NCBI GenBank assembly: GCA_021613535.1
Contig: CP075493.1
Location: forward strand, 9,920,001 to 9,984,000
DNA: 64,000 bases
Source of the DNA: Adineta vaga
Lineage: Eukaryota > Animalia > Rotifera
Direction: 5' to 3'
Part shown: one piece after another, positions 9,283-52,346 of the stretch
Layout of the letters: each line of letters opens with the position of its first letter
How positions within the stretch are numbered: position 1 is the first letter of the stretch
The notes under the pieces: model-generated
Database searches by the model: none
Seen by the model: only the letters and a program-made list of their open reading frames with translations
What the model was told of the DNA's origin: nothing
Made by a program: the position numbers and the translations under genes

Positions 9283-10100
9283 TAAGATCGAGAAAGGACA
9301 TTCCGAAGGATGTCTCATTCAACAGGAATAACCTTCTCGAACAATAAGAAAGAAAGAAAGAAGGAAAGCTATTTTGTTCTGCTTCAACTCTATTTTTCTT
9401 TCTTATGTGTGAACCTTTTCCCTTCTCAACCTTCACTATGTTAAAAAAGCATACACTTTTTCTCGTTAATAATACATATCGCTTCTTCTTTTTCTTTCTT
9501 GTTCGTATATTTCTTTGGTTTTTTTCTTGTCTCTCTATATGCATAATACAAATTTAATTTCATACAAATATCTCTACACAGTATATCATAATAAACAGAA
9601 AATTTAAGAAAATTCCATGTATATTCGTCTGTAATGGTTTACAAATCTTGAATTAGTATAATATTATTTGGAGGTCATTCAGATAATGCATTGTTTTAGA
9701 CATAGATGAGAGTAGGAATGTTAGTCAAGTAATAAGTCAACAATAAGTAAGATAATGTGTCATTGCAGAAGAATCGTCGAGCCTAAGTGTATGGTGCCTT
9801 CATCGACGTTTTGATATGCCTCATTCAAGTCTAGCATGATAAAGGTTGATCATTTGCAGTTCTCTGTTCATATCCAAAGAAATGATATTTCCTACATGCA
9901 TCTGTAAGATAGGAAATGTTTCTTTCTTTTATGATACGATTGATAGATTCTCCTAAGGTTAATTGACTTGATGATTAGATTGATTAGATGATATCTAAAT
10001 CTGTATTTCAATCCTTTTGAGAAAAAAACGTTTACAACTCATCTTTGTCATTGTCAGAATAATTTGTTATGCAATTAGAACACTTTAAAAACAAATTACG

Positions 10101-11185
10101 CTAAAATTCATTCGTCTCTGTCATTGTTGGTTTCTTTCGTAGAATTTGCCAGAATTTGAGCCACTGTACACGTGAAAGTCGATAAATCATTTCAGCAATT
10201 TCCATCAATGAAAGAAAACTAATACCAATCCAAAGACCTGTATGTCCACCAACATTAGAAATAACATCAACTGCACTAATAGTTGCTTGTTGATAATAAA
10301 TTTCACTACGAGTTGTTTCATAGGCCACTTCTAATGAAACATAACTCGATTGAATCTCTGATATCCATGATGTTGACCAATTGTGTGGCAAGAGAACTTG
10401 TGATGATTCAACAAACTGTTTAATATTCTTCAACAGAGAAACAGGTGATGCTAAAAGTGACGTTGATCGAGTGTTAAAAGCAATATATGTACAGTCTTGT
10501 TGACAAGGAGAACAATAAGTCGTCCAAATACTTTCTGTATTCATCATTTCTGATTCTGCTTGTCCATAACATGGATCACTTACATTACAAAGTGGTATAT
10601 GAATGGTTTGATCCGAATGGGGAAGTACTATAAAACGTGTGTTCCACGAAAAAGGATTCCCACATCCACATTTTTGATAGCTACAACAATGGTGTTTTTG
10701 TTGAAATAACAATTGAGATGAAATTATTTTCTTATTTACTTACACATACGATTGTGAACAAGTAAGAAAACATGCAATTTCTAAATATCCGTAATCAGTA
10801 CCATGATATTCATTAAACATTGCTTGCATTCCTGTAGTAAGTGTATTACTGCATACTGTATAGGGTGATGGTAAGAAATAACTCGTCTTCTTTTCATATC
10901 CTAATTTATGATGTTGACCAGGTGCAAGTTGCTGAGCTCTCATTTCAATATAGGGTAATTGTCTATTATCATGAACTAATACTACTGCTCCAATACCTAA
11001 AGAAAAGAGGAACACGAATGAAATTGAAATAATGAAATTATCTGTTACCATCTGATAAATGAGGAACATATTGATGTTGATGAACATAGAGACGTAATTT
11101 AAGTACACCATTTCCTCCATTATCAGTATTATACTTTAAAGTTTGACCAAAACTATCTTTCAATTGCGCATTGAATGTGTAACAT
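10101..11185 (-). pseudogene. 5'-truncated copy (last ~2.3 exons plus native stop) of the DEG/ENaC channel gene
   Basis: Encodes QKCGC, ISNVGGHTGLWIGISFLS and the native end MTETNEF*. Homology to the copy at 19.6-21.3 kb stops abruptly mid-exon at 11185. Confidence 0.88.
10111..11185. repeat. 1075-bp direct duplication, copy 1 (partner 19625-20699)
   Basis: Colinear with 19625-20699 with no indels; about 20 substitutions counted by eye (~98% identity). Confidence 0.95.
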
Positions 11186-11225
11186 TATAAATGTGTAGAG
11201 AGGTATTTTGTAATTTCGAAAGATC

Positions 11226-11465
11226 ACTGAGAATTGTATAAAATAGAAAAAAGAAGTTTTAACGATTATGATCATATGTTGTTGTTTTGATGAAAGATTG
11301 GAAATGATACAGAAAACTTTTCTTTTATTTAGATAGGTTATGCTGACTGTGATCTTTTTTCATAGCGGGAATGTGGGGATATTGAAATTCTATTTTCTCT
11401 TATTTTTTTTTCTCTTCTATTTTTTCGCGCGTTCCAATCTGAACTAAATTCTCATGTCAACTGTG
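11226..11465. repeat. ~225-240 bp direct repeat, copy 1 (partner 16194-16418)
   Basis: ACTGAGAATTGTATA...TCAACTGTG is near-identical to 16194-16418. Copy 1 carries a 15-nt slippage insertion (TATTTTTTTTTCTCT). Confidence 0.95.
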
Positions 11466-18241: not shown

Positions 18242-19624
18242 ATGTTCAGCACTTTTCTATTCAATGTTTAAAACCGACTTATATAATTCGATTATATTAT
18301 AATTTAAGTGTAAAATGAAAAAACTTAATGATATGAAACAATTTCAAAAAGCTTTAGAATTTTTTTTATGAATATGAACGAACAAATCATGATATGATTA
18401 CAGATCTAGCTGTTAGTCACGCATTAAAATCTTGTACTAATATGAGAGATTTTCAAGCTGATTTTAATCTTCATCAATGACACTCATCTTTAATAGAAAA
18501 AAACAATTATTCATTAGCATCACTCACTCATTTTTATAGTTAGTAATAATACGTCATTTCTAATTCGATACCTAATTGCATATCAAAAGACATAAAAAAT
18601 GCTGAGAAAATTTTTCAAAAATTGAAAAATAAAACAGTTGATATTTACGATGCCATGATGCAAGGTTACATCCAAAATAATCAGGAACACAAAGCAATTG
18701 ATATTTCCTTTCAAATGTCAAATCCTAGTCCAAAAAATGTTTCGTTATTCTTTCATGCATGTGCACAAATTGGAAATAAAGAAACATTAACGTTAGTTAA
18801 GTAAGTCTTTTCAAATCTTCCATGTCATTATCAAATTGATCGATATATATTAACAACTGTTTTTAATGTTTTTATTAAATGTGATGATTTGTCAAGTGCT
18901 GAAGAAATTTTTCCTAAAGTTGCAACCAATACACTTAGTTATGGAAATTTAATGACTACATATAATGAAAACAATCAACCGAACAAAACATTAGATTTAT
19001 ATGAACAAATGAAAAGAAAACAAATTAAATTAGATTCAACCATTTCTTTTCTATTAATCAATGCATGTGCTGCTCTTGGAATCTATTCAATATGTCAATC
19101 GATTTTTGAACAAATTCCAAAATCATTTCTTAACAATATTTATATTAAAAATGCACTGATAGATATGTGGGTAAGAATATTGATAAATGAATGATGACGG
19201 AAGAAAAGTATGTTTTTATTCGTATTAGGGAAAATTGGATTGTATTGATAAAGCGAAGAATATGTTTGATTTGTTAGCACAACCAGATACAGTTGGCTAT
19301 ACGTCTATGAGTTAGTTTTAGGTAATATTTTAATAAATAAAGGATTTTTTTCATCATTTCAATTAGTTAATTCCTATGGATTAAATGGAATGGGATTGGA
19401 AGCAATTGAATTATTTTATCCGATGCCATCGCAATTAATTCTTGAAGAAACTTATGTTTGTATTCTGAATGCATGTTCATATTCAGGATTGGTGGAAGAA
19501 GCTCAAAAGATATTTTCAAAGATAAGAAATCCGACAGAAAATATTTGTACAACAATGGTCAGTCAAAAGAAAACTGTATTTGTGATATTTATTTCATTGA
19601 ATTTTAGGTCGATTGTTTTAGTAG
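18242..19624 (+). pseudogene. PLS-class (plant-like) pentatricopeptide repeat gene, disabled and 3'-truncated
   Basis: Spliced NALIDMW|GKLDCIDKAKNMFD..DTVGYTSM|INSYGLNGMGLEAIELF..TYVCILNACSYSGLVEEA..TTM|VDCFS. Introns 19171-19228, 19311-19366, 19558-19607. Stops at ~18268, ~18478 and 18802. Cut at 19624 by the ENaC duplicate. Confidence 0.85.
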
Positions 19625-21277
19625 TTCATCTCTGTCATTGTTGGTTTCTTTCGTAGAATTTGCCAGAATTTGAGCCACTGTACGCGTGAAAGTCGATAAA
19701 TCATTTCAGCAATTTCCATCAATGAAAGAAAACTAATACCAATCCAAAGACCTGTATGTCCACCAACATTAGAAATAACATCAACTGCACTAATAGTTGC
19801 TTGTTGATAATAAATTTCACTACGAGTTGTTTCATAGGCCACTTCTAATGAAACATAACTCGATTGAATCTCTGATATCCATGATGTTGACCAATTGTGT
19901 GGCAAGGGAACTCGTGATGATTCAACAAACTGTTTAATATTCTTCAACAGAGAAACAGGTGGTGCTAAAAGTGACGTTGATCGAGTGTTAAAAGCAATAT
20001 ATGTACAGTCTTGTTGACAAGGAGAACAATAAGTCGTCCAAATACTTTCTGTATTCATCATTTCTGATTCTGCTTGTCCATAACATGGATCACTTACATT
20101 ACAAAGTGGTATATGAATGGTTTGATCCGAATAAGGAAGTACTATAAAACGTGCATTCCACGAAAAAGGATTCCCACATCCACATTTTTGGTAGCTAGAA
20201 CAATGGTGTTTTTGTTGAAATAACAATTGAGATGAAATTATTTTCTTATTTACTTACACATACGATTGTGAACAAGTAAGAAAACATGCAATTTCTAAAT
20301 ATCCATAATCAGTACCATGATATTCATTAAACATTGCTTGCATTCCTGCAGTAAGTGCATTACTGCATACTGTATAGGGTGATGGTAAGAAATAACTCGT
20401 TTTCTTTTCATATCCTAATTTATGATGTTGACCAGGTGCAAGTTGTAGAGCTCTCATTTCAATATAGGGTAATTGTCTATTATCATGAACTAATACTACT
20501 GCTCCAATACCTGAAGAAAAGCGGAACACGAATAACATTGAAATAATGAAATTATCTGTTACCATCTGATAAATGAGGAACATATTGATGTTGATGAACA
20601 TAGAGACGTAATTTAAGTACACCATTTCCTCCATTATCAGTATTATACTTTAAAGTTTGACCAAAACTATCTTTCAATTGCGCATTGAATGTGTAACATA
20701 AACCATACCGTGATGATATAAACCACGTGAAATTAGCTGTTGTACATAACATTTCATTGTAAGAACAATATATCATCATTGATTCGAGTGAATAGAAGTA
20801 TTCATGTAGAGATTCATTACGATTGAGTTTCGATGTTAAATAATCATGAATATATGAAATTTGTTCATCAGTAAAATTTGTTGAATCGTTTGTGTCAGTA
20901 AAATGAAGTGTATTGGTATAGTTTAGAAACGGTTTAATAAAACGATCATAACGCAATGGAGAATAATTACAGATTGTAACTGCAGGAAACGCTTGTGGCC
21001 ATTCGCGAATAATTTCTATGGATGTTTGAGTTGGATATTCAAAATATGCTCGAATCGATTGAAAAATGAAATATGTCATTATGCCAGTAAAAATAAGCAA
21101 TGAAATCGACCAAAAAACTCGATTGTGTATACTTTCACTACGAGCAATACCTGGTATACCATGTGTGGATGTATTCAAACTGAATTCTTTGATTATTGAA
21201 CGAGCTTGTCGAGTTTTCGAATTTGTTTTTGTCTCATTTAAGTTGAACGATAACTTTCTTTTAGTACTTTTAATCAT
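19618..21277 (-). CDS. DEG/ENaC (ASIC-like) sodium channel subunit, 3 coding exons, C-terminus altered by the junction
   Basis: FSLNTSTHGIPGI (HG motif), TM1, YFEYPT, FPAVTICNYSP, YGLCYTFN, Cys-rich thumb, SNVGGHTGLWIGISFLS (TM2). First ATG at 21277. Stop TAA 19618-19620 lies in PPR antisense sequence. Confidence 0.9.
19625..20699. repeat. 1075-bp direct duplication, copy 2 (partner 10111-11185)
   Basis: Colinear with 10111-11185. Confidence 0.95.
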
Positions 21278-36727: not shown

Positions 36728-38347
36728 ATGTTAAACGATTCATCATTATCAACAATACTATTTCGTATCGAACATTTATTCGATGGACAAACTTCCGCGT
36801 CACAAAAATCGTCAAATTTTTCACCAAATCATCCTATGTCTGAAATGTCTCTTAGTAATGACATTGCCGATGATCTCGATCGATTTCTAACAAATAATGA
36901 ACAACTTTCGGATCGAAGTCATACATCATCACCAACAATTTCTCCATCATCAGTTTCATTAACACAACAAATCTCTTCATCATCGCAATTTGAATTCATA
37001 TTAAATGCATTAACTGCATCATCGGCACGAATTAATGAAGAAACGACAACCTATTTAAATCAAGGTCAACCATATGAAATTAAATTTCTTACAAATAATC
37101 ATTTATTAACAGGAGAAAATCATTCCTCACCAACTATTTATCGTTCTATATTACGTTTGTGTTTTTGGGATAAAAATTTACAAAGTCAAGAACGTGAATT
37201 CATGCAAAAATGGTTAAATGAATATCAATTATCATCCTTATTTGATATCGATATGAATTTAACATATGGAATTTTATCAATCATACGTTCACGACAAGTT
37301 CCAAATGCTGTCGAAATCGTTTGGGATCCATCTGCAACAACATCTTTATTCGTTCGATTTAAATGTACATCAACGGATTTTGCACAGAAACGACATGGTG
37401 GTGAAAAAGGTATACCATTACGCATACAAATTGATACATATCATGAAGATGATGTTCATGCTATAAAACATTTACATTCATGTTGTTGTAAAATTCAATT
37501 ATTTCGTTTGAAAGGTGCACAAAGAAAAAATAAAGCAGATAAAATGAGAATTGAAAAATTAAATCAAGATCAACGTCGACGTTATCAAACAACAATAGAA
37601 TATACAATTTTACAATCATGTCTGGTTTCATCTTTATATACGATGAATCTTTTGAGTTTATCTTATCCACCCGATGATTTATCCGATGTTTATACTCAAT
37701 CATCCACTACAACAGAAAATCTTCTCGTCGAAAAAAAAGATTATGATGATTTACAAAACAAATCGAACAATATTGATAATCACCATCGTAAACTTTTACC
37801 ATCATCATCACCATCATCTGTACCGGATATGAAAGGTATTTTTTCTGAATGGCAAAACGATAAAGTTGATATAATACCGAATATAACTATTCGATCAACT
37901 AATGAAGATGTTTTAAAATGGTTAAATAGTAACAATTTTTCATCTGTTTTAAAGCAATTTCAACATTATACAGGTCTCGATATACTTCGTTTAACTACAA
38001 ATGATATTCGTCGAATATGTAATGAAGAAGATTCGATTAGTATTCGTCTTTATAATCGATTACATGAAACCATTGTTCCACCATTGAAAACTCTTTATAT
38101 TAAAACGACAAATAATGATATCTATTCAGCTATTTATTTACATACATTTACTTGTCGTGAATTAGGTGAAAAACTGTTCGAATTAACTCAACAAGAACCT
38201 TATTATATACTATTAGAATTCAATAAGATACAAATTAAGATTGATAATGATAGTGTTGTTAAATATTCTCTACCGGATCAAGGTCGATTTTTTCTGAAAA
38301 ATTTTTCTTGTGAATTTGTTCTTTGTTTGATAAATACTTCTGTATAA
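36728..38347 (+). CDS. LSF/TFCP2 (CP2/grainyhead family) transcription factor with SAM domain, single exon
   Basis: TTYLNQGQPYEI, CTSTDFAQKRHGGEKGIPLRIQIDTY, HSCCCKIQLFRLKGAQRKNKAD; SAM-like WLNSNNFS..FQHYTGLDILRL..SIRLYNRL. Confidence 0.9.
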   Translation: MLNDSSLSTILFRIEHLFDGQTSASQKSSNFSPNHPMSEMSLSNDIADDLDRFLTNNEQLSDRSHTSSPTISPSSVSLTQQISSSSQFEFILNALTASSARINEETTTYLNQGQPYEIKFLTNNHLLTGENHSSPTIYRSILRLCFWDKNLQSQEREFMQKWLNEYQLSSLFDIDMNLTYGILSIIRSRQVPNAVEIVWDPSATTSLFVRFKCTSTDFAQKRHGGEKGIPLRIQIDTYHEDDVHAIKHLHSCCCKIQLFRLKGAQRKNKADKMRIEKLNQDQRRRYQTTIEYTILQSCLVSSLYTMNLLSLSYPPDDLSDVYTQSSTTTENLLVEKKDYDDLQNKSNNIDNHHRKLLPSSSPSSVPDMKGIFSEWQNDKVDIIPNITIRSTNEDVLKWLNSNNFSSVLKQFQHYTGLDILRLTTNDIRRICNEEDSISIRLYNRLHETIVPPLKTLYIKTTNNDIYSAIYLHTFTCRELGEKLFELTQQEPYYILLEFNKIQIKIDNDSVVKYSLPDQGRFFLKNFSCEFVLCLINTSV

Positions 38348-38515: not shown

Positions 38516-39857
38516 TCAAAGATCTTCTTCGAATATCACACGTCTAGAAAAATTAAAAATATAGTTCATTTTCTTTTTATGAAAATTTCAATAAATATTC
38601 TTACTTCAATGCAGGTATCAATTTCGGTGCTTGATATATAAGTGAATGTCCGTATCCCTCACCATGAAATGATATCATATCAATAGTAAAATGAAGTAAT
38701 TTCTTCTTCTGTCGATGATCTTCGCGAGCAGCTAAAGCAGCTTGTAATAATTGTTGACCATGGTTGTACGGTACAGTATAATCATCATCGGCATGTAAAA
38801 TAACACATGGACAATTGAGACTTGCTAAATGTCCACGTGTTTGAAATCCAAGTTTAGTTGTTTGTAGAGCTTGTCCTGTTAAGCTGGAAAACCATGGGTG
38901 CCAACTAAATAATAACGAAACATAATGTGTGCGTATTGCTTCATGAATATTAATGAATGCAGCTTCGAGAACAATTCCAGCAAGTGTTTTACTTTCATCA
39001 TCGGATAATCTTGCAGCTAATTGACAAGCAACTGCTGAGCCAAGTGATTGACCCCATATGTAGATTTTTCGTTCGCCATTTGTCATATTATGTAACCAAT
39101 CATAAACATATCGAGCATCTTGAATTAGACCTTCTTCTGTTGGATCACCAGTTGAATCACCAAAACCACGATAATCAAAAGTAAATACATCGTATTTTAA
39201 TTCGTCACGTAATTTTTTACACATTCCACGACGATTAAATAAGGAACTAAAAAATTTCAATTGAAAGATTTCAGACAAATATAGTCATTTAATCATACCG
39301 ATCAAATGCATTGCCATGAAAATAGATTATCATCGGAATCGATGATGATGTTGATGCAATATGTTTTTGAAAATAATCGTCATCATCAATGTAAGATTGA
39401 TCTGAACTGATGAAGAACGATAATGCCTGAAGAAGTACATATATATTTTTTAATGCTAATATGAAACGTAATTACCTACCAGACACCAATACGAACATTA
39501 GGTTCAACGTTTGAATAGAAATTAAATACTCGATTAGCACCAAATGTTTCCGGTTGAGTAAAATTATTTCCTGTTTTGACTAGATTTCGTAAAATAGATC
39601 ATAGATGTATTCATAGATATATAAATCATCTTACAGATATTCATAAAAACAATATGTTTTATAATTGTTGGATAAACAAGCAGCAGAATTGGTAAGGTTA
39701 ACGAAATGAAAACATATATAGTACTGATGATTACACTTAATTTCGTCAAAATTCGTCTATTTGAAAGATTGAAAAAAAACAAACATCATAATAGAAATAT
39801 TCGGAAATCTATTTACATTGGTTTTGGCCATGGACGAGATGAATCTACATCAGACAT
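38516..39857 (-). CDS. ABHD12-like alpha/beta hydrolase (paralog A)
   Basis: N-terminal TM, IYFHGNA, FDYRGFGDS, WGQSLGS nucleophile elbow, LEAAF, LHADDD, GYGH. ATG 39857, stop 38516-38518. Confidence 0.88.
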
Positions 39858-39982
39858 ATCTATCTACAAAGAAGATTTTTGTTAATTTCATTAGCATTGG
39901 CAAACATTCAATTATAATTTATTTCTACAAAAAAAGAGAGCTTATATGACACATATAGATCAGAATCGTTCGTTTCTATCTT

Positions 39983-41541
39983 TTAAGAGACTGGTAAACG
40001 TTTGAGAAATGCAAAATCACTGACTAATTCTTGAAATTTTGAATATGAATAAATATGATTATGTCCACAACTTGCTGAACGTGGAACAGTTATCAGACGA
40101 ACAGAAGGTAGATTAGGATCACGATGAGTTTGTACATATTTTTCGATCTAAATAGAGAAAGAAGAAAAATGAATAGAGATGAGAATAATCATCGATTGAT
40201 CATACTAATTGAGCATGATGATATGGGATAATAGCATCATCTTCTGAATGAAAAATTACAATTGGTAAGGGAAGAAAGGAAATTCTAGAAGAGAAATAGA
40301 AAAGAGATCAATGACAGATATGATAATGTCAATCATACATTTCATTATTGGGAAAATCAAGTTTTACTATTGTTAAAGAATCCAATGCAGCTTTCATAAA
40401 ATATGGATTAACTTTCAATACCTAAAAGAGACAGGTTATACTTGTTTTCATAGAAAAACAAACTATGAATTTACTCGAGTTAATGGATAAGAAGCAAGTG
40501 CTTCCATTGTATTGAAAAAAGGTGCTTCAAGTACCAGACCAGCTGGTTTCTCGACTTCTATATAATTCAAAAGAAAATCGATGCAAATAAAACGTCATTG
40601 TCTGTAGAAAAAAGAACTTGCATACCATTATGATTTTGAAATAGATGATTCATTGTCCATAGAGCAACACCCGTTCCCATTGAATGACCCCATATTGTTA
40701 TAGGATTTCCGGGACAAACACTCCGTATTGTATTGTATACATGTAATACATCCGTTACAATACCATGTATAGTTGGTGTACCGGTTGAATCACCATATCC
40801 ACGATAATCAACAGCAATGATATGATTACCAAAAGCACTCATAACTCTATAATGGTTCGATCGATAATGTGTTGCTCTAAAAACCATTCATTAAAATTTC
40901 TTTCTTCGATATCGAACTTTAATGTCGATTTACCTTGTACCATCTTGACCATGTAAATACATAATGATAGGATGATTATTGGATGGTATATATTGTTTCA
41001 AATGATCAGCAAGTGTAGATAAATTAGGATCAATTTGTACGGCGGATGGTACAACATACCTATATAATGAAAACATTTTGTGTAGAATCAATGTTTTACA
41101 AAGTTCGTATAAGAGATTTTCGAACTACGTTTGATGAAATAACACTATTAGTTAATCTTACCAGATTCCGACCGTTACATTGGGTTCAACTTGTTCATAA
41201 ACATTGACAGCATTCAATTTGAAAGCACTTGGTTTCGTTAAATCAATCCATGGATAATATCGAGCTATAGAAAACAACGTGAAGTCTTTGAAATCAAATG
41301 AAAAATTCCAAAGACAAAATATTTACACCAAGTTTGAAAAAACATTTTTTTCAGAATAACATCTCCATAGGAACGAAGTAATACTGGTCCTAATATAATC
41401 AATGATGTTATAATCAAAACGACGCCAAGAAACCATCTTATTAAACTAAAATATGGCATTTAATACATTTACATTTCTAGAAATGATTTCTTACATTTTT
41501 TTCAAAAACGAAAATTTCGTCGAATGTCCTTCTGCACTCAT
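39983..41541 (-). CDS. ABHD12-like alpha/beta hydrolase (paralog B)
   Basis: First exon MSAEGHSTKFSFLKK (ATG 41541) spliced via a 49-nt intron to ILIRWFLG (TM). YLHGQDG, DYRGYGDS, WGHSMGTG, LEAPF, FHSEDD, CGHNH. Confidence 0.85.
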
Positions 41542-41663
41542 CGATCTACAAAGAAAAGAGATTTATTAATAGACTAAAATTGACCTCAAATCATCAATTA
41601 TTTTATAAATGCGCTAAAATAATGTTTGTTTTTGTTTTCTCAAATATAAAAAAAAAGATCTTT

Positions 41664-42859
41664 CTATATCATTTTAAGTATAAAATTCGGTATATCAAAA
41701 CTATGATCATCACAGATAACAAGATCAAAAATATTCTTATAAACTTCTAATTTTGTTGGTGTACTTCGATTTAAATAGCCTATTTTAAGTATGTGTTTCA
41801 GATTCTTCATTCCACCAATCATTCCAACATCACCAAGAGTATCACCAAGAACGATTACATTTGGACGATTCAAAATTGATTGATAATATGGACTATCATG
41901 AATTTCATGTTCATTTTTATTAAATGAATGAATTACTTTTTCACTGAATGATACGGGTTTCCCATCGGAATCGTATCGAATGAAATTCGAAACTATATGT
42001 GCTGAGGCATGATTACGTTCAAACTCTGGAATTTCTTTTTCAAGAAAAATTTTGATCACATCACCTAAAATAGAATTAATATTCTATGAAGACTTCAAAT
42101 GGAAAGGCAAATAGCTACCTAAACCAGCAGACAAAATTAAAATCGGTGTACGACTTTGTAATAATTCAGTGATAAATTCACGAACACCTGTTCTTAATTG
42201 AAGCGTCGATTCATGAACTAATTGACGGATCATTGATTTATTGAGATTCGATGAGAGAATAAGAGATTGAGCTTTACGCCACCAGTCGATCATATGTGGA
42301 ATTTTTTCTTCGACTGGTAAATGAACATCATGCTCAATAAGGATATATTTTGAGCGTAATTGATTAGCTTGATCTCGAAGTAATGTACCATCAGGTAACT
42401 AAATGAAATGAATAGAAAAGTTTTGAAATACTTCGACTATTCTGTCTTTCGTTGTTATTATTATTGGTTTATTTGAATAGGATCAGTATTGTCAACTACA
42501 AATATTTACTATTGAAAAATTAATTTTATTTGTAATGTTTGCCCTAAGTATCTAATGTTGCATATACTTTCAGTTTTAACAACGATCGATTTTAGTCTAT
42601 TAAAAACTTATTCTCGAATGATTATTGATAGAAATCTTACTAAAACGTGTTCATTGCTTTCGACGACAGCAAATGTTGTTGGTGCAGGATTACCATTAAC
42701 TTCGTAGGTTGATAATGTATAATCAAAATCAGCTACAATATGTAACTTTTTTCGTCCATCATTGATTAATGATTGAATAACTTCTTCCACATGTGTTCGT
42801 TTATCATCCTGGATATGAACGTTTGAATAGGTTTGAAGAAGTTTTTCTATGCAACTCAT
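41664..42859 (-). CDS. NT5C3: Cytosolic 5'-nucleotidase III (pyrimidine 5'-nucleotidase, HAD family)
   Basis: HIVADFDYTL (DxDxT), KIPHMIDWW, ILSAGLGDVI, IVSNF, IHSFNKN, NVIVLGDTLGDVGM, LKIGYLN. Confidence 0.92.
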
Positions 42860-42962
42860 GCTTATCTAAAAATTATTAAGAAAAGAAAAATTATTACTCA
42901 TTTTCATTTCACAAAGAAAAAAATATTATTTCAAAAAAACAAAATCATAGCACCGGAATGGA

Positions 42963-45081
42963 TTATAGAGCTGTAGTAGTTATATTATCATCATTCTTAT
43001 TATCACGATTCTTCTTCATTTGATTCGTCAGTATCTTTAATGCTAATACAGATGTTAATAATGCACGATAAGTTTCATATAATTTCACTCGAGTAAGATT
43101 TTCATCTTTGTATAATTTTGTCATCATTGCATTGTATGATTCAAGTTCATACAAACTACACAAATGCCATTGAGGAAGAATATCATTAGGCAATGATGCT
43201 GTTTGAGAATATGTTACTAAAAATGATGGAATACGACGTGATAAAATTGGATTTGGAGGTACTATTGGTGTTTTAACCAATTCTCGATTACTAAAATACA
43301 ATTAGAGAATGCATTTATTGATGGGTAAGAAATGAGAGATATTTTGCTTGCCGTTGAATACGTTTTTGTAGAAATAATTTCTGTTCGTGTTTATCGATTT
43401 CATAGGAATCACTACTGGTTTCTTCTTCTTCTTTGACAGTGTCAGTTTTATTTAGGTGTGATGTTACACGACGATGTGTTTTTTCTGCAGCTCGACCTGC
43501 TTCTTCGACGCTTTTTCTAATACAAGAGAAACAAAATCAATTTTCTCTGTATTTAAAACTTCTGTATTCTCACTTGACCGGATCACTAAACGCTTTTCGT
43601 TTCTGTCGTTGACGTCGATTTTTTTCTCCTTCTTTTCCATAAAGTAGACGAGAAAACTCTCGATCAAAACCAGCTTGTGGTGGATTCGTTGGAGAATAAT
43701 TTGGACGAGTCATTGCTGATAATGCTGAATGTGAACGTTCGATATTGGTTTTCAATTCATAACGTGGAGCTGGAAGTCGAGTAGATGTATTTGCGACAAG
43801 CATTGGATTTCCTGGTGATAAATGTTGGGTTATTTGTGGTCCAGTATGCACATGTTCACGTGTTAATGATGATGATGTAGGAAGACGAATTAAATGTTGA
43901 GCTATTTTATTCGCTAATAAAACAAGAAAGGAATTAGTTTCTTTTGGTTCATAAAGAAAAGATGAAACACACCTGATGAAGGTGGTCGATGACCACTGGT
44001 TACAGACGATGAATAAGATGGAGGTGGTGGTCGATTTCGATTCTGTTCATTCAAAAGAATTGGAGCAATTATAGGGTGATTCGGTTGAGATAGAGGAGGA
44101 GTCCATCCTAATGTTGATGGAGGAAAATTCAAACTCGAATTATTACTTGAATAAGAAGGTGGTTGTGATAATGATGATGATGATGATGTGTGTGATTCAA
44201 TTGTTGTTGGTATTTTAAGTTTAGAATAATAAGTAGCAAGTATCTCATCAACTGTTAATCGTGATTTGGGTTGCTCAACATGTTGTTGTTGTCTTTCATT
44301 ATTTTCGTTGATTCGTGGAACAACGTTATGTTGCTCCAATAACTGTTCTAACGAAGATGAATAATGCATTCGTATTGGATTAATCGGTGTTGATAAGAGA
44401 TCAACATGAGGATCTGTTTGAGAAGATATTGGTACGTTCGAACGATACGAATGTTTATGTGATGGACTGACAGATGCAGAATCAGTAGGTGAACGAATAA
44501 GCGAGATATTCGTAGGTGGAACTTCGTCGACAACAGCAGCTGCAGAAGAAGGTGGTGGTGGTACAGATAAAATTGTTGCTTGACGTAATTGACCGAATGT
44601 AATGGGTTGAGATCTCGATTCAATACTGGAAGTTGGCGTTTTCAATGGTGAAACTGGTTCACCAACTCCTCCTCGTCCTCTCAATGACTCAAGCATTGTT
44701 ACAATTCGTCGTTGAATTACTCTTGATTGACCATGTGATGAATCAGGAAGTGCATTTTCTGTCAAAGGTGATAATATTGGCTCATCTGAAGATAGTTTCA
44801 CATTATTTTGAGTCACTTCATTTTCGTTGTTAACTGTGGATGATGACGCAAGTAATTCGACCATTCTCGAATTGAATCGTGTACTATTTACTCCTGGATG
44901 AAGAACTAGAAGATACCGAGATTTATATTATATTTGTTTCTAATTTAATGCGTATTCAACATTTCTTCTACACAACTCTATACTTTAATTACAAACCTGA
45001 TGCTGTTGATGGATCATCTCGTGGAATGAATTTACCAGGAGTATTACTCTGAAATGTTACTTGTTTCTTTTTCGACATCAT
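42963..45081 (-). CDS. Salvador (SAV1)-like scaffold with C-terminal SARAH domain and no visible WW domains
   Basis: N-terminus MMSKKK..PGKFIPRD resembles SAV1 MLSRKK..GKYVKKE. C-terminus PNPILSRRIPSFLVTYSQ..ILPQWHLCSLYELESYNAMMTKLYKDENLTRVKLYETYRALL resembles the SAV1 SARAH region. The middle is S/P-rich. 5 exons. Confidence 0.65.
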
Positions 45082-45162
45082 ATATTATCTAGAATACATA
45101 AATATATACGTTTCATTCTTTAAATTTATTTCATTTTAATTATATAGAGAAAAACAAGATTT

Positions 45163-45579
45163 TTAATCTTTAATTGCATATGTTCGTTTAGGGAAAGCAA
45201 AATTTTTTCGTTGAGCTTTTGTTAAACGATTCGATTCTTCTTTCGACGTCAATTCACGTCGTTTTGCTCGTGTTTGTTTAGGTCTTAAATCTTTTGGTTT
45301 ATATTTTTCTCCTTGATAAAAACTTCTTAAATTATCTTTTCTTGTTTGATTTTGAACAATATGTACATGAACAATTGATTTTTGAACTTGACCAATTTTA
45401 TCCACATTTTTACTACCAGTTTTCAAACTAGCTAATTCTTCTTGCAGATTATTCAATTGTTCTTCGAGTTCATCTGACAATACATCAAAGAGTATATATA
45501 TAAATAAAAACTAGGAATATAATATGAAATATGTACCTGGTTTTTTCGATCGAATATCGGAGCATCGGAGTTGAGCCAT
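45163..45579 (-). CDS. RPL35: 60S ribosomal protein L35 (uL29)-like, divergent; 2 exons
   Basis: MAQLRCSDIRSKKP|DELEEQL..KSI..V..NQTRKDNLRSFYQGEKYKPKDLRPKQTRAKRRELT..FPKRTYAIK matches eukaryotic uL29. Confidence 0.85.
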
Positions 45580-45765
45580 ATCATGTCATCATTGAAGGAA
45601 GGTTTGAAGTATAAACTAAATAACAGAAGAAAAAAAAATGAATCATCTATCTCGTCACAATAGAGGGCAGTAGAAGAACAAGTTAAATTGCGAGTGGTTA
45701 ATTCATTGGATAAAACAAAACAAACATTATTTGATATTGAAATCAAAAGTCGATCAAGACAAAAT
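45580..45765. promoter_or_regulatory. Bidirectional promoter between RPL35-like and XPO4
   Basis: Only 186 bp separate the divergent ATGs (45579 minus, 45766 plus). Contains a GC-richer core CTCGTCACAATAGAGGGCAGTAG...TTGCGAGTGG. Confidence 0.7.
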
Positions 45766-48700
45766 ATGGATATGGAAAATGTTCGTCAAGTACTTGAAGA
45801 TGCTGCTCAAACATTCTTATCTGCTGCAAATACAATTACAAATGAACGACGTCGAGAAGCTGAAAAAGTCAGTGAAAACAAATTCTTCTTTCATTTTCGA
45901 AATTCTTTTTTTTTCTCATAGGTTTTTTTGCAATTTCGTCGTTCACAATTTTCATTAGATTTATATCGATATCTAATTGAACATTCATCTTCAAGTTATG
46001 TTGTTTATCAAACTTTAACTGCACTTCGCGAAGGCATTGTTAAAGAATGGTCATCATTAGATGATACGTTGAAAGAACAAGTTGTTCAGTATCTTCTTTC
46101 CTATGTTTATACTCATTATTCAACATTATCAGTACATGTACGAGAACAAGCATTACAAATTCTTGTCGTTATTAATAAACGACGTAAAGCTCAACGAGTT
46201 CAAATAGCAAAAGATGGTTTTACAATTAGTTTAGCATTGAATAATCTTCTACAATCAAATAATGATAGTGAATTTCAATTTGGTTTGATGTTACTCAATG
46301 CTTTCATTAATGAATACAGTTTTAGTAATGGTAAACGAGTTTGAAATGTTTTTTTTTTCATTTCTCACTGAATGTCATTTTCTTTTTGCAGCAAATGAAG
46401 CTGGTTTAACACTCGAACAACGTCATTCTGTTAAACGTGATTTTGAAGCAAATGAATTAAAAAGTGTTTTTGAATTATTATTGAATAAACTTCAAAATAA
46501 TCTTGGATCACTTTCATCCAATACTCATCTATTTTCATCAATATCATCATCAATTGAAAAAATTCTTCTCTGGAATTTTTCATCATCATTACCAAATATT
46601 CGTCGAAGTATGGAATCATCAACAAATGTCGAATCGATTGACTGGAAACCACCAAATAGTTGGAAAGAATTAATATTCGATCAAAAACTTGTCGAATTTT
46701 TCTTTCATATTTATAGTACATTAAAATCCTGTGTATGATATTGATTTCTTCCTCTCATCATTATTCCGTACTCTTTTTGTTGTTGTTGTTGTTTAGAATG
46801 AAACAAAAGTTTTCCTACAACTTCGTTGTCAGATACTTCGGTAAGTTTTAACAAAATCTAAAACAATTCAATAAAAAGAAGTTCAATATTTAGATGTCTT
46901 TCACAATTGGCATGTTTAAATGGTCCATTGATAAGTGATGAAGAATGTCGTTTACGTTATTTAACAACATTTTCATATTATTTTGTTCAAACCTTTCTAA
47001 CCAATTCGGTATTAACAATAAATTTAACTGAATGTTTTGATCTTTCAAATATTCTATCAAATTTAATTACATCATTTACTGTCAAAGGTTTTTGTTCGAT
47101 GCATAATGATCTATGTAATTCATTCTTACAATTAATGGCTCAAATAACTATTCTTCTTTGTCGAACATCTGTCACATCATCAAATAATCAATTAGATAAG
47201 ATTATAGAAGATCCAACAATTGCCAAAGAAACATTTGATCGATTATTACAAGCATGGTCTAGATTGCTATATGGAATTGATTTTGGTCGATTTGCAAATT
47301 TACGACCATTAGCGATTGAAGTTTTTGATACATATCTTCAAACACATTTACATACGGATGAAAAACAAGATGATAAGGAATTAGACTTTGATGATGATAA
47401 TGATGAAGATGATCGGGATTTATTCAGGTAAGAATATAGAAATACATTCTTCCACTACTATTTTATATCTTTATCTTCATGAATTTTAGTGAACAATTAA
47501 TATGCATTGGTCTCTTTGGTCGTCATATCATTGATCATGCATTACCATTATTAAATCGTCTATTAATCGATCGAACAAAAACTTTATATCAAATTATGAA
47601 TAGTACACCATCGAATATCAATAATAATAAATTAGATCGAATCAATGATGATTTACATTGGTTATTATTAATATGTGGTCATGTTATTACTGAAGAATAT
47701 GATGCCGATGAACAAAAAACAATACCAGATGCAATTATGAATTTTTCAAGTGAACAAGTGAAACATTGTGATTTGAAAAAATGTGTTCAAATTTCTCAAC
47801 ATATTCTTCAACAACCACAATTAGATTTAACTGACGAAACAATTCATGGTGTTAGTCCTTTGACACAATGGTAAGATTTTTGAAATCAATGAACATCTTT
47901 TATTAATTCGTTTTTTTAGTATGGTTATTGTTTTGAAATTATCAGAAATTGAACGACTTCTGTGCAATAAAGGTCTTTTTGAATATATAAGTGTACAAGT
48001 TGCTATCAGTTTGACATGGTTTATTCGACGATTAGCAGCGAATTATTTAGGTTTTGATGAACAATCATATAAAGAAGGTAAATCTCGATGAAAGTGAATA
48101 TCATTTGATTTCATTTGATTTTCATCTTTGTAGTTAGTCAGATTTTAGCAATCATGCTTGGTAAAGGAAGTGAAATGTTAGAATTCCTAACAAATTATTT
48201 TCTTTCAAAAGTTGTTACTAATCTACAAATGTGGGCATCCGAAAGTGATGTGATTAAAGAAACAGGTATTTCAATAGCAAACTAATCATTGATTTCTATT
48301 CCAACCTATGTCTTTCTTTTCTAGCCGATCTATTTGTTACTTTATCAATAAAAAAAGAATCATCCTTAATTCTGATTAAAAATGAATTGTTCTGGACATT
48401 AGCTAATAATGTTATATCAAATCAAATGCCTATACAATTAATCAATGAAGAATATAAACGTTTACTAGTCAAAGGTATAACATGTTCTTGTTTGAATAAT
48501 TCATCCGATGAATATCGTTTACATTTTGATCAATCTATCTTTCAAATACTTAATCAACGTTTAAAATCTATTGTGGAATCCATTCAAACGTTACTTGAAC
48601 AAATTAAATTGAATAATAATAATAAAATTCATTGTACTAATGCATTACAAACATTCTATACCGAAAATGTTTTAAATCAAATAAGTACATTGATTAATTC

Positions 48701-49989
48701 CTATTGTGGATTAATTGAAGGTGGTTCACGATGTTCATCTGTACAGATAACATATCTTTTTGAACATAGTCAACAAACATTACAAAATATTCTTGATCTA
48801 TTCGATTTTTATCATAATTATAGTGATCAAGTACAAATTATATTGGAATTATTTTCCTTGTATGCCGAACATGTATTAGTTTATTTAAATGAAAATCATA
48901 CGAAAATCTTCTATGCATATGTCTTGAGATTATTACAGATATTTACAAAATGTAATTATGGAAAGAAGACGAAAGAAATCAATGCCGATGATGATTTTAA
49001 TGGACATATTTATACATTATTGAATTGTTTAAATCATTTATTAGCTAAAGATTTTATTGATTTTTCAAATGATTCATCAACAAATTCGTAAGTATCATAT
49101 TTAAATGTGATTGAAGATTTTAGACTAAAATAATCAGAAATGAAAATATTGAGGATAGTCTATTTATATTGTGATTCGAGATAGAAATAATAGATGGGAT
49201 CTGATGTAAACCTGAGCGATATACATTTTTCTTCAATGTTTACGAACAATAATAATAGTTCACGAGTTTATCAATCTATTTATTACTTCTAAATGAGATC
49301 CGAAATGCGTATGATCCATCAATCTCTAATTTTATAAACAAATCAATATTTTGACATTTGTTTCTTTTTCCTTCTTCGTTAATAGAGAAATAAATGTTGG
49401 TGATGTTGCTCTCTATGGTTTAATCATTTGTTTACCATTAATTCAATCAGATAATCTACTAAAAATTCCATCAATAAGTACTTGTTATTATAAATTGGTA
49501 TCATCATTATGTGACCAACATTCTGAATGTGTCTTTCGTTTACTTAATGCGGAGCAATATTCAATATTTTTATCGACAATTAAATTAGGCCTTGATAATT
49601 ATGATAATGAAATATGTAAAATGTGTTTAGAAACTCTTCAAAGTTTAACATTAAATACCATGAAACAACAGAAAGATAAGGAAAAAATCAAATATCTCGA
49701 ACATTTTCTTGATTATCTTCTTCAAGAAATAGTCACAAGTACAACAACATTATCTGATCTATTCGATACATTAGCTGGAACAATTTACACATTGATATGT
49801 GCTTATCCCAATCAATTCTTTCAATTTCTTTCTCAAATGAAACAACAAGATGAGAATTTAATACCTATTATTGACAAATTTGTACATGATATTGGACAAA
49901 AATTTGATTATAATCGCAAAGCTAAAGTTTCCTTTACTGTTAAGTTTGAATCTTTTGTTACAGATCTTAGGCGAATTATGAAAAAATGA
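45766..49989 (+). CDS. XPO4: Exportin-4
   Basis: VLEDAAQTFL..NERRREAEKVFLQFRRS..YVVYQTLTALREGIVKEW, CLSQLACLNGP, EDDRDLFSEQLICIG, NDDLHWLLLICGHV, AKDFIDFS, DVALYGL..LLKIPS. Multiple in-frame introns. Confidence 0.88.
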
Positions 49990-50132: not shown

Positions 50133-51123
50133 ATGATTCCATGTCTAATTCTTGTTTTTAGTATTCTATATCATTCATTGGCATTCAACGATAGGATGGC
50201 TTGGCGTTCTTCAGGTGCATCACATCGAGAATTAATTGAGAATTTATATAAAAATGGTCTAATCAAAGATCAACGTATTAAGCAAGCAATGTTAGAAGTT
50301 GATCGAGCTGATTTTACACAACAAAAAATGGATGCATATGATGATCGACCACAATCAAGTATATTCGTATAGAAACGTGTTTTTTTAAAAGTATTTATCT
50401 TTATATTGTAGTTGGTTATGCGGTAAGTACTTGAACGGTACTAATAATTAATCTATTATGAATTTCGCATTTCTCAAAATCATTTTCAGGTCACGATCAG
50501 GTAAGAAACTTATATACGTGTGAATTTCATTTGAAATAGTTTTTATTCTCCTAGTGCTCCACATATGCATTGTTTCGGATTGGAAATTCTTAAAGATCAA
50601 TTAAAACCCGGTAAAAATTATTTACGAAAATTTCTTGAATAATTTTAATTACGTTTTTGTAGGTGCGAAAGTTCTCGATGTAGGTTCTGGTTCAGGATAT
50701 TTAACTGCATGTATGGCTCGTCTTGTTCGGCCAGGTGGTAAAGCTGTGGGTATTGAACATATTCAAGAACTTGTCGATAAATCCATTATAAATCTTAAGA
50801 AAAATCATGCAAATTTATTTGATGAAGGTGTTCTGGAAATTCATAAAGGTGATGGTCGACAAGGCTATGCTGCAGAAGCACCCTATGATGCTATTCATGT
50901 TGGTGCTGCTGCGCCGGATACACCACATGAATTGATTCGTCAACTTAAAGTTGGTGGTCGACTTGTTTCACCTGTCGGTGGGTCTGGAGGTCAAGAAATG
51001 ATTACATATGATAAGAAAGCAGATGGAAGTTATCATGAAGAACGACATATGGGTGTGATGTATGTACCATTAACAGATGAACAAAAACAATATGCAAGTG
51101 CCGGAATGCGCAAAGATTTATAG
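50133..51123 (+). CDS. PCMT1: Protein-L-isoaspartate O-methyltransferase (PIMT) with hydrophobic N-terminal extension; 5 exons including two 11-nt micro-exons
   Basis: [10 protein letters not shown] at ATG 50196, PQSIGYAVTISAPHMH (spliced), [48 protein letters not shown]. In-frame upstream ATG at 50133. Confidence 0.95.
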
Positions 51124-51244: not shown

Positions 51245-52346
51245 ATGCTTAGTAGACGTGTTATATCATCAATTTTGTCGAATAAATCTTGCCGATTTAT
51301 TCAGACAAGTGCTATTGTTAATGCAAATCAACAACAAACTTCTCAATCAAGTTATGATAAATCTTTATATGATTCAACACGAAAAAATTTATATATCAAT
51401 AGTGAAACACGAGTTATTTGCCAAGGTTTTACTGGTAAACAAGGAACATTTCATTCTCAACAAGCACTTGATTACGGAACAAAGGTAGTTGGTGGTGTTA
51501 GTCCAAAAAAAGCAGGAACAAAACATTTAGGTTTACCAGTATTTAAAAATGTTCATGATGCTATGAAAGAAACAGGAGCAACAGCAACAGTCATCTATGT
51601 TCCACCTCCAGGTGCAGCTGAAGCTATTCTTGAAGCTATTGATGCTGGTATTGGTTTAATTGTATGCATTACAGAAGGTATTCCACAACATGATATGGTC
51701 AAAGTCAAACATAAACTTGTTAGACAAAATAAATCACGACTTGTTGGACCAAATTGTCCAGGTGTAATTGGTAAGTTTTTTGTAAATATTTAAATAGATT
51801 AAGAATAGATAGAGATATTTAGCTCCTGGTAAATGTAAGATCGGTATTATGCCTGGTCATATTCATCGGCCAGGACCTATCGGTATTGTTTCACGTAGTG
51901 GAACATTAACATATGAAGCTGTTCATCAAACAACTCAGGCTGGTCTCGGTCAATCTTTATGCGTTGGTATTGGTGGTGATCCATTCAATGGTACTGATTT
52001 TATTGATTGTTTGGATCTGTTTTTGAATGATTCAGCAACGAAAGGTATTATTCTTATCGGTGAAATCGGTGGTAATGCTGAAGAAGCAGCTGCTGAATAT
52101 CTCAAGGAAAAGAATACAGGTTCTAATGCTAAACCTGTTGTTGCTTTTATTGCCGGTCAAACTGCTCCACCTGGTCGTCGAATGGGTCATGCTGGTGCGA
52201 TTATTAGTGGTAAATCTGGTGGCGCCGATGGAAAAATTGAAGCTTTAAAAGATGCCAAAGTTACTGTTAGTGATTCGCCTGCGAAAATGGGTCAATTAAT
52301 GTATAAGTTAATGAAAGGCGAAGATCAACCATTTCAACAAAAATAG
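51245..52346 (+). CDS. SUCLG1: Succinyl-CoA ligase alpha subunit, mitochondrial; 2 exons
   Basis: Mitochondrial-type leader MLSRRVISS; [55 protein letters not shown]. Confidence 0.97.

Follow-up and report, generated by a model that had tools for sequence, protein, structure and literature searches.

A candidate spliced-leader-resolved five-gene operon of Adineta vaga, a bdelloid rotifer

Do bdelloid rotifers, whose messages are known to receive a spliced leader (SL) by trans-splicing, also transcribe neighboring genes as a single precursor that the leader then resolves into separate messages? The question is raised by five closely spaced, co-oriented genes of Adineta vaga, in the order RPL35-like > Salvador-like > NT5C3 > ABHD12-B > ABHD12-A, which occupy positions 38516 to 45579 of the minus strand in a 64-kb stretch of contig C1 (C1:9,920,001-9,984,000; hereafter the window, to which all coordinates refer; the assembly is made up of 6 contigs totaling 100.8 Mb). 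Our analyses indicate that these genes probably constitute an SL-resolved operon and that at least part of the five-gene unit is very probably co-transcribed. As judged from sequence, co-transcription of the five genes is suggested by several observations taken together, namely the SL on orthologous transcripts, the constrained length of the spacers, an especially short spacer in Adineta ricciae and a contig, L071, in which the last gene appears to be expressed through the acceptor of the gene before it.

All five minus-strand open reading frames (ORFs) are intact in the gene models, with no internal stops. Database comparisons were run with single exons or with database proteins. Gene 1 (45163..45579; 117 aa, 2 exons) is a divergent RPL35/uL29 paralog with a weak Pfam L29 match, having 79% identity to its A. 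ricciae ortholog and 52–55% to the canonical copies on contigs C3, C4, and C6. The last exon of gene 2 (42963..45081; 616 aa, 5 exons) matched SAV1 (6ao5_B, E = 2.8e-8; 6bn1_B, 2e-7) across the C-terminal SARAH region; however, the two WW domains expected of SAV1 gave no Pfam WW match at E ≤ 1 in four full-length orthologs, and it is for this reason that the name Salvador-like is kept. Its fourth intron (43351-43291) is probably GC-AG. Gene 3 (41664..42859; 299 aa, 3 exons; I4U23_003198) encodes the pyrimidine 5′-nucleotidase NT5C3 (Pfam UMPH-1, E = 1e-70) and gene 4 (39983..41541; 351 aa, 9 exons) the ABHD12-like hydrolase B (Pfam Hydrolase_4/Abhydrolase_1), the public model of which (I4U23_003197, 321 aa) is without exon 1. 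Gene 5, ABHD12-like hydrolase A (38516..39857; 351 aa, 6 exons), is the last in the unit and is defined by its gene model and orthologs. Apart from the tandem ABHD12 pair, no common pathway was found among the five members. These results uphold the identities assigned in the preliminary description of the locus to NT5C3, both ABHD12-like genes (alpha/beta hydrolases) and the RPL35-like gene (a divergent L29); for Salvador-like a SARAH region was found and WW domains were not.

The same description had proposed stop-to-ATG gaps of 81, 103, 122, and 125 nucleotides (nt), each with a splice acceptor 4–7 nt ahead of the downstream ATG, and the gene models reproduced both. Spacer 1 (45082..45162) has its acceptor G at 45089, 7 nt before the ATG, and an AATAAA at 45130-45125; spacer 2 (42860..42962) has its acceptor G at 42866, 6 nt before the ATG, no AATAAA, and the word CCGGTGCT at 42949-42958; spacer 3 (41542..41663) has its acceptor G at 41546, 4 nt before the ATG, and an AATAAA at 41567-41562; and spacer 4 (39858..39982) has its acceptor G at 39864, 6 nt before the ATG, and an AATAAA at 39923-39918. 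Such gaps are unusually short for co-oriented genes, as the published median intergenic distance for A. vaga is 0.8 kb (PMC5916493). The acceptors are also distinguished by the two bases that follow them, in that AT occurs after 5/34 cis acceptors and after 4/4 of these, or 6/6 when the plus-strand unit described below is included (Fisher P = 1.2e-4 with that unit). This signature, a pyrimidine-rich YAG/AT (the slash marking the splice junction), occurs in the window at a rate of 5e-4 per nt per strand, and it is absent before the ATG of both head genes, RPL35-like and, on the plus strand, XPO4.

Evidence that these acceptors receive an SL comes from public intronless bdelloid contigs encoding orthologs, whose origin from RNA is deduced from the absence of introns and the presence of the leader. 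Two contigs from two SRA runs (L024 and L025) encode ABHD12-A orthologs and carry a 22-nt leader at the 5′ end, followed by AT, with the ATG 12 nt past the junction. An NT5C3 ortholog (L040) opens with the last 10 nt of the leader and continues with ATTAAATG, the letters that follow the acceptor in the C4 genomic copy. In contigs from two JGI samples (L071 and L073) the full leader is fused to ATCG-ATG and to what is left of ABHD12-B exon 1, a remnant that contains a stop, after which the sequence runs through the last ~35 nt of a spacer-4-like sequence and its unspliced acceptor into a fully spliced ABHD12-A. The simplest reading of L071 is that the body of B has been lost by deletion at a short shared repeat, so that transcription of A begins upstream of the B acceptor; alternatively, these contigs may be assembly or reverse-transcription chimeras. 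Trans-splicing of orthologs of three of the four downstream genes is well supported, the SL expected at the predicted acceptors having been found for NT5C3, ABHD12-A and an ABHD12-B-type start. For Salvador-like no transcript 5′ end was found, and a metagenome scan for the SL joined to a Salvador-like start gave 29 chance matches only; a homolog search with ABHD12-B likewise returned no full-length transcript. Several further contigs were set aside: L038 and L039, considered as polycistronic RNA, retain introns and are genomic, L072 is also genomic, and L026 was not counted as SL-bearing, having merely five leader-like bases at its start.

In sequence the leader equals the Rotifera SL as published (PMC3795323, Table 1), and 59 copies of it are present in the A. 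vaga genome, compared to 0 in the control. In the 10 copies that were read in context a GTAAAT donor directly follows the leader and the sequence is structured (z = -3.2), while an Rfam search with the SL gene gave no match. Since the leader is preceded by T in the genome, the cap is a possible source of the first G in the published 23-mer. The SL RNA genes (L027-L036, on C1, C2, C5, and C6) are mostly arranged in head-to-head pairs ~134 bp apart, with at least two intron types; those on C2 alternate with U2 snRNA genes, and in eight SL copies the C at leader position 9 is replaced by A.

Gene-order conservation, which had been suggested as a check, favored the operon, as both the order and the short spacers are retained across bdelloid families and an ancient genome duplication. 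All five genes recur in a homeologous block on C4, where the gaps measure 134, 74, 90, and 140 nt and the proteins are 52–65% identical where compared. The gaps are 44, 115, 127, and 132 nt in A. ricciae, where the stop and acceptor of spacer 1 are just 34 nt apart, 89, 116, 100, and 176 nt in Rotaria magnacalcarata, and 135, 102, and 175 nt (gaps 2–4) in Rotaria sp. Silwood1; an additional bdelloid genomic copy (L038) has gaps of 62 and 96 nt. Every one of the 23 spacer copies examined ends in YAG/AT 2–14 nt before the ATG and 22 of the 23 have a length of 44–193 nt; as the copies are related, they do not count as independent trials. Introns of these genes and flanks have expanded by kilobases in Rotaria, and the spacers have not. 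For instance, in R. magnacalcarata, which has a median intergenic distance of 1.4 kb (bdelloid genome paper, PMC5916493), ABHD12-A has grown to 2.4 kb and its 3′ flank to 3 kb, and the spacers are still 89–176 nt. Didymodactylos carnosus also retains the order Salvador-like > NT5C3 > B > A, together with those acceptors that were examined. One Rotaria sp. Silwood1 assembly (L021) is without most of XPO4, the gap between XPO4 and RPL35-like, RPL35-like itself, Salvador-like, and NT5C3 exon 1; as a second assembly (L022) has Salvador-like, L021 represents a deletion allele or a misassembly.

A number of observations weigh against a single five-gene unit or against parts of the argument for it. 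No intact dicistronic molecule was seen and the RNA support is all from orthologs, none being from A. vaga itself; moreover, the 5′ ends and first 900 nt of L071 and L073 are identical, and the two may not be independent. The SL is carried by about 60% of A. ricciae genes (PMC4824033), and YAG/AT also occurs ahead of the RPL35 copies on C3, C4, and C6, ahead of the C4 PCMT gene (where XPO4 is missing) and ahead of other genes in the window. Because the acceptor is present on genes outside shown operons, we take it as a sign of trans-splicing and not of polycistrony. There was no genome-wide peak of AATAAA 21–34 nt from such acceptors (210 matches, vs. 219 at 49–62 nt), which leaves Ciona-type polyadenylation at the acceptor a candidate; the AATAAA ends reported at 45125, 41562, and 39918 are correct in position, with little weight as an argument for an operon. 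Spacer 2 is conserved between A. vaga and A. ricciae (z = 6.8). Finally, gap 2 of D. carnosus measures 2.2 kb and no RPL35-like gene was found upstream, as a consequence of which we regard the NT5C3 > B > A core as more secure than the full extent of five genes.

Spacer 2 is central to the alternative that survives best, although we consider it unlikely, which is that there are two units or a hybrid operon, with RPL35-like > Salvador-like as one and NT5C3 > B > A transcribed from a promoter that is internal to the locus and lies within this spacer or just ahead of it. When the last 20 nt are excluded, spacer 2 is the most conserved of the four between A. vaga and A. ricciae, the others having z = 1.2 (spacers 1 and 3, intron-like) and 2.9 (spacer 4), and introns at most 3.5. 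It carries CCGGTGCT in five genomic copies, AATAAA is absent from its short copies, and in the long D. carnosus spacer a similar word lies ~250 nt ahead of the NT5C3 acceptor. Genome-wide the word is 3.4-fold above control (121 vs. 36), and it may represent either a seed site for the miR-29 family or part of a promoter. However, the 62-nt spacer of L038 has no CCGGTGCT, and where present the word lies 5–40 nt past the Salvador-like stop and reads as a possible miR-29-type seed site. In addition, conservation about equal to that of spacer 2 (z = 7.1) is seen in the tail-to-tail 3′ untranslated region (UTR) gap of 168 nt between ABHD12-A and a convergent CP2/Grainyhead gene, the end of which is at 38347. 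We rejected CCGGTGCT as an element common to intercistronic spacers, since it was found in spacer 2 only.

Slightly less probable again is that there is no shared precursor, the five genes not being transcribed from a single start site at about 45.6 kb. The SL and its acceptor are found also on first or isolated genes, and no dicistronic RNA of an intact locus was seen. Furthermore, this region is compact whatever the orientation of neighboring genes: a two-way promoter fits into the 186-nt head-to-head gap between RPL35-like and XPO4 and two 3′ ends fit into the 168-nt tail-to-tail gap, which leaves the earlier statement that the spacers have no room for a promoter a weak one. Independent transcription would nevertheless leave unexplained why Rotaria spacers stay short amid expanding introns and flanks, how stop and acceptor can be 34 nt apart in A. 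ricciae, and how ABHD12-A in L071 is expressed via the B acceptor with the body of B and most of spacer 4 missing.

The donor-like GTs noticed in the preliminary description would give introns of only 21–39 nt, whereas GT..AG spans of 42–89 nt are present (e.g., from 39905, 39928, 42912, and 45155) and the shortest verified intron is 49 nt; short length alone therefore cannot exclude cis introns. That the acceptors close ordinary 5′ UTR cis introns, with the SL uninvolved, is nonetheless highly improbable, for although three spacers hold such spans and genuine introns here can have weak donors, orthologous transcripts open with the SL at these acceptors and no spacer has a conserved donor.

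In the five-gene operon as we would reconstruct it, Pol II would start within the 186-nt gap beside XPO4 and produce a single pre-mRNA across all five genes, after which the single rotifer SL would be trans-spliced to the YAG/AT acceptor before each downstream ATG, capping each message. The SL step is seen in orthologs of genes 3 and 5 and in the gene-4-type start, and would be expected to apply to gene 2. The 3′ ends may form near each acceptor, with poly(A) possibly within roughly 0–40 nt of the next acceptor, since the spacer is mostly 3′ UTR of the upstream gene. An NT5C3 contig (L041), for instance, has an 84-nt 3′ UTR that closes with a run of pyrimidines, 30 nt from the start of the AATAAA, with no poly(A) on the contig, and the stop-to-acceptor distance of NT5C3 in six genomic copies is 86–123 nt. 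It would appear that little or no intercistronic DNA is left in this spacer.

The 186-nt gap (45580..45765) is non-coding, as judged by its indels, and conserved with A. ricciae (z = 9.3), leading us to suspect a bidirectional promoter; the contrast with spacers 1 and 3, which beyond the acceptor are not conserved, favors the operon. It contains a CTCF-like GC-rich word, CAATAGA[G/T]GGCAG (~45640-45655), also conserved in A. ricciae (L016, ~4600). On its other side lies a plus-strand set of genes headed by XPO4 (45766..49989; 1155 aa, Pfam XPO4 on the ortholog), followed by PCMT (50133..51123; 143 nt past the XPO4 stop, acceptor G 50124) and SUCLG1 (51245..52346; 121 nt past the PCMT stop, acceptor G 51235). 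XPO4 > PCMT > SUCLG1 is a candidate second operon that would share the head-to-head gap. XPO4 and PCMT are fused in the A. ricciae annotation and PCMT and SUCLG1 in that of D. carnosus, and fused gene models are a known side effect of operons (PMC7986045). The order is retained in Rotaria sp. Silwood1, with a PCMT/SUCLG1 gap of 117 nt, whereas XPO4 is missing from the C4 copy, where PCMT retains its acceptor, and from D. carnosus. A broader proposal, which we put forward tentatively and regard as possible more than probable, is that two back-to-back operons of five and three genes have one 186-nt two-way promoter, are older than the bdelloid duplication, use a single SL, with poly(A) placed at the acceptors or beside them, and can lose single members (XPO4 on C4, ABHD12-B in L071), expression of the genes downstream continuing via the acceptors that are left.

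The proposed mechanism is itself of a known kind, and its layout is known from nematodes and sea squirts. As in tunicate operons (Ciona intestinalis, PMC1488885; Oikopleura dioica), the genes are co-oriented and unrelated, one SL serves both monocistronic and downstream genes, and very little DNA would separate an acceptor from the 3′ end upstream of it; the SL sequence differs, however, and dicistronic cDNAs were shown in Ciona, while the rotifer case is known from genes and SL contigs. Chaetognath operons (PMC2481426, PMC12460157), which also belong to the clade Gnathifera, similarly have no operon-specific leader and a ribosomal-protein gene at the operon head, and in chaetognath RPS14-PCNA the poly(A) site is 3 nt from the acceptor; unlike A. 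vaga with its single SL, chaetognaths have several SL forms of unrelated sequence. SL2 operons of Caenorhabditis elegans are alike in the ~100-nt scale of their gaps and in having gene models fused by annotation. In A. vaga, however, the ~100 nt run from stop to ATG, 3′ UTR included, and not from poly(A) site to acceptor. A poly(A)-to-acceptor distance of ~100 nt, as in C. elegans, is not accommodated where, as in several copies, stop and acceptor are only 34–119 nt apart and the 3′ UTR of NT5C3 takes up 84 nt, and the leaders on downstream orthologs are not SL2-type, being the ordinary major published SL. Neither an SL2-like leader form nor a shared U-rich/Ur element was found in the unit. 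Together these features may place the poly(A)/acceptor layout nearer to the tunicate and chaetognath type than to the SL2 type. A 2017 Terminon paper reportedly describes multi-ORF retroelements in bdelloids. Rotifer SL trans-splicing (Pouchkina-Stantcheva and Tunnacliffe 2005), as cited in PMC3795323 and PMC4824033, involves the identical leader and is described as trans-splicing only, with no operons.

Some features outside the two units also deserve mention. YAG/AT precedes the ATG of a RASEF-like gene (5173, minus strand), a RING-finger gene (52891, plus strand) and a cathepsin-like gene (56953, plus strand), all named from ORF reading; with no neighbor shown at operon distance, these are likely ordinary trans-spliced genes. 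The three canonical RPL35 copies are mutually similar, and a tRNA-like sequence, probably tRNA-Pro, lies on the opposite strand ~280–330 nt past the stop of two of them (L013, L014), while gene 1 has upstream ATGs at 45592-45584. A duplicated stretch with near-identical ORFs was noted around an acetyl-CoA-hydrolase-like, F-box-like and PPR-like region (window ~10100-11350, 16300, and 19600-20700).

Trans-splicing in rotifers has been known since 2005 (via PMC3795323 and PMC4824033), and rotifer operons were listed as not determined in a 2008 table (PMC2481426, Table 4). Consistent with the earlier remark that operons had not been characterized in this group, we found no report of a rotifer operon in the literature searched, which included the bdelloid genome papers and is incomplete in coverage. 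If the operon is real, its conservation would add a phylum, Rotifera, to the list of those bearing operons and, as chaetognaths have them, would make it possible to test whether the gnathiferan ancestor already had operons. It would also explain fused or 5′-truncated bdelloid gene models, of which there are three examples here, and would provide a desiccation-tolerant animal for testing how operons are connected with recovery from growth arrest. The back-to-back arrangement, if true, would connect the structure of operons with the loss of genes in degenerate tetraploids.

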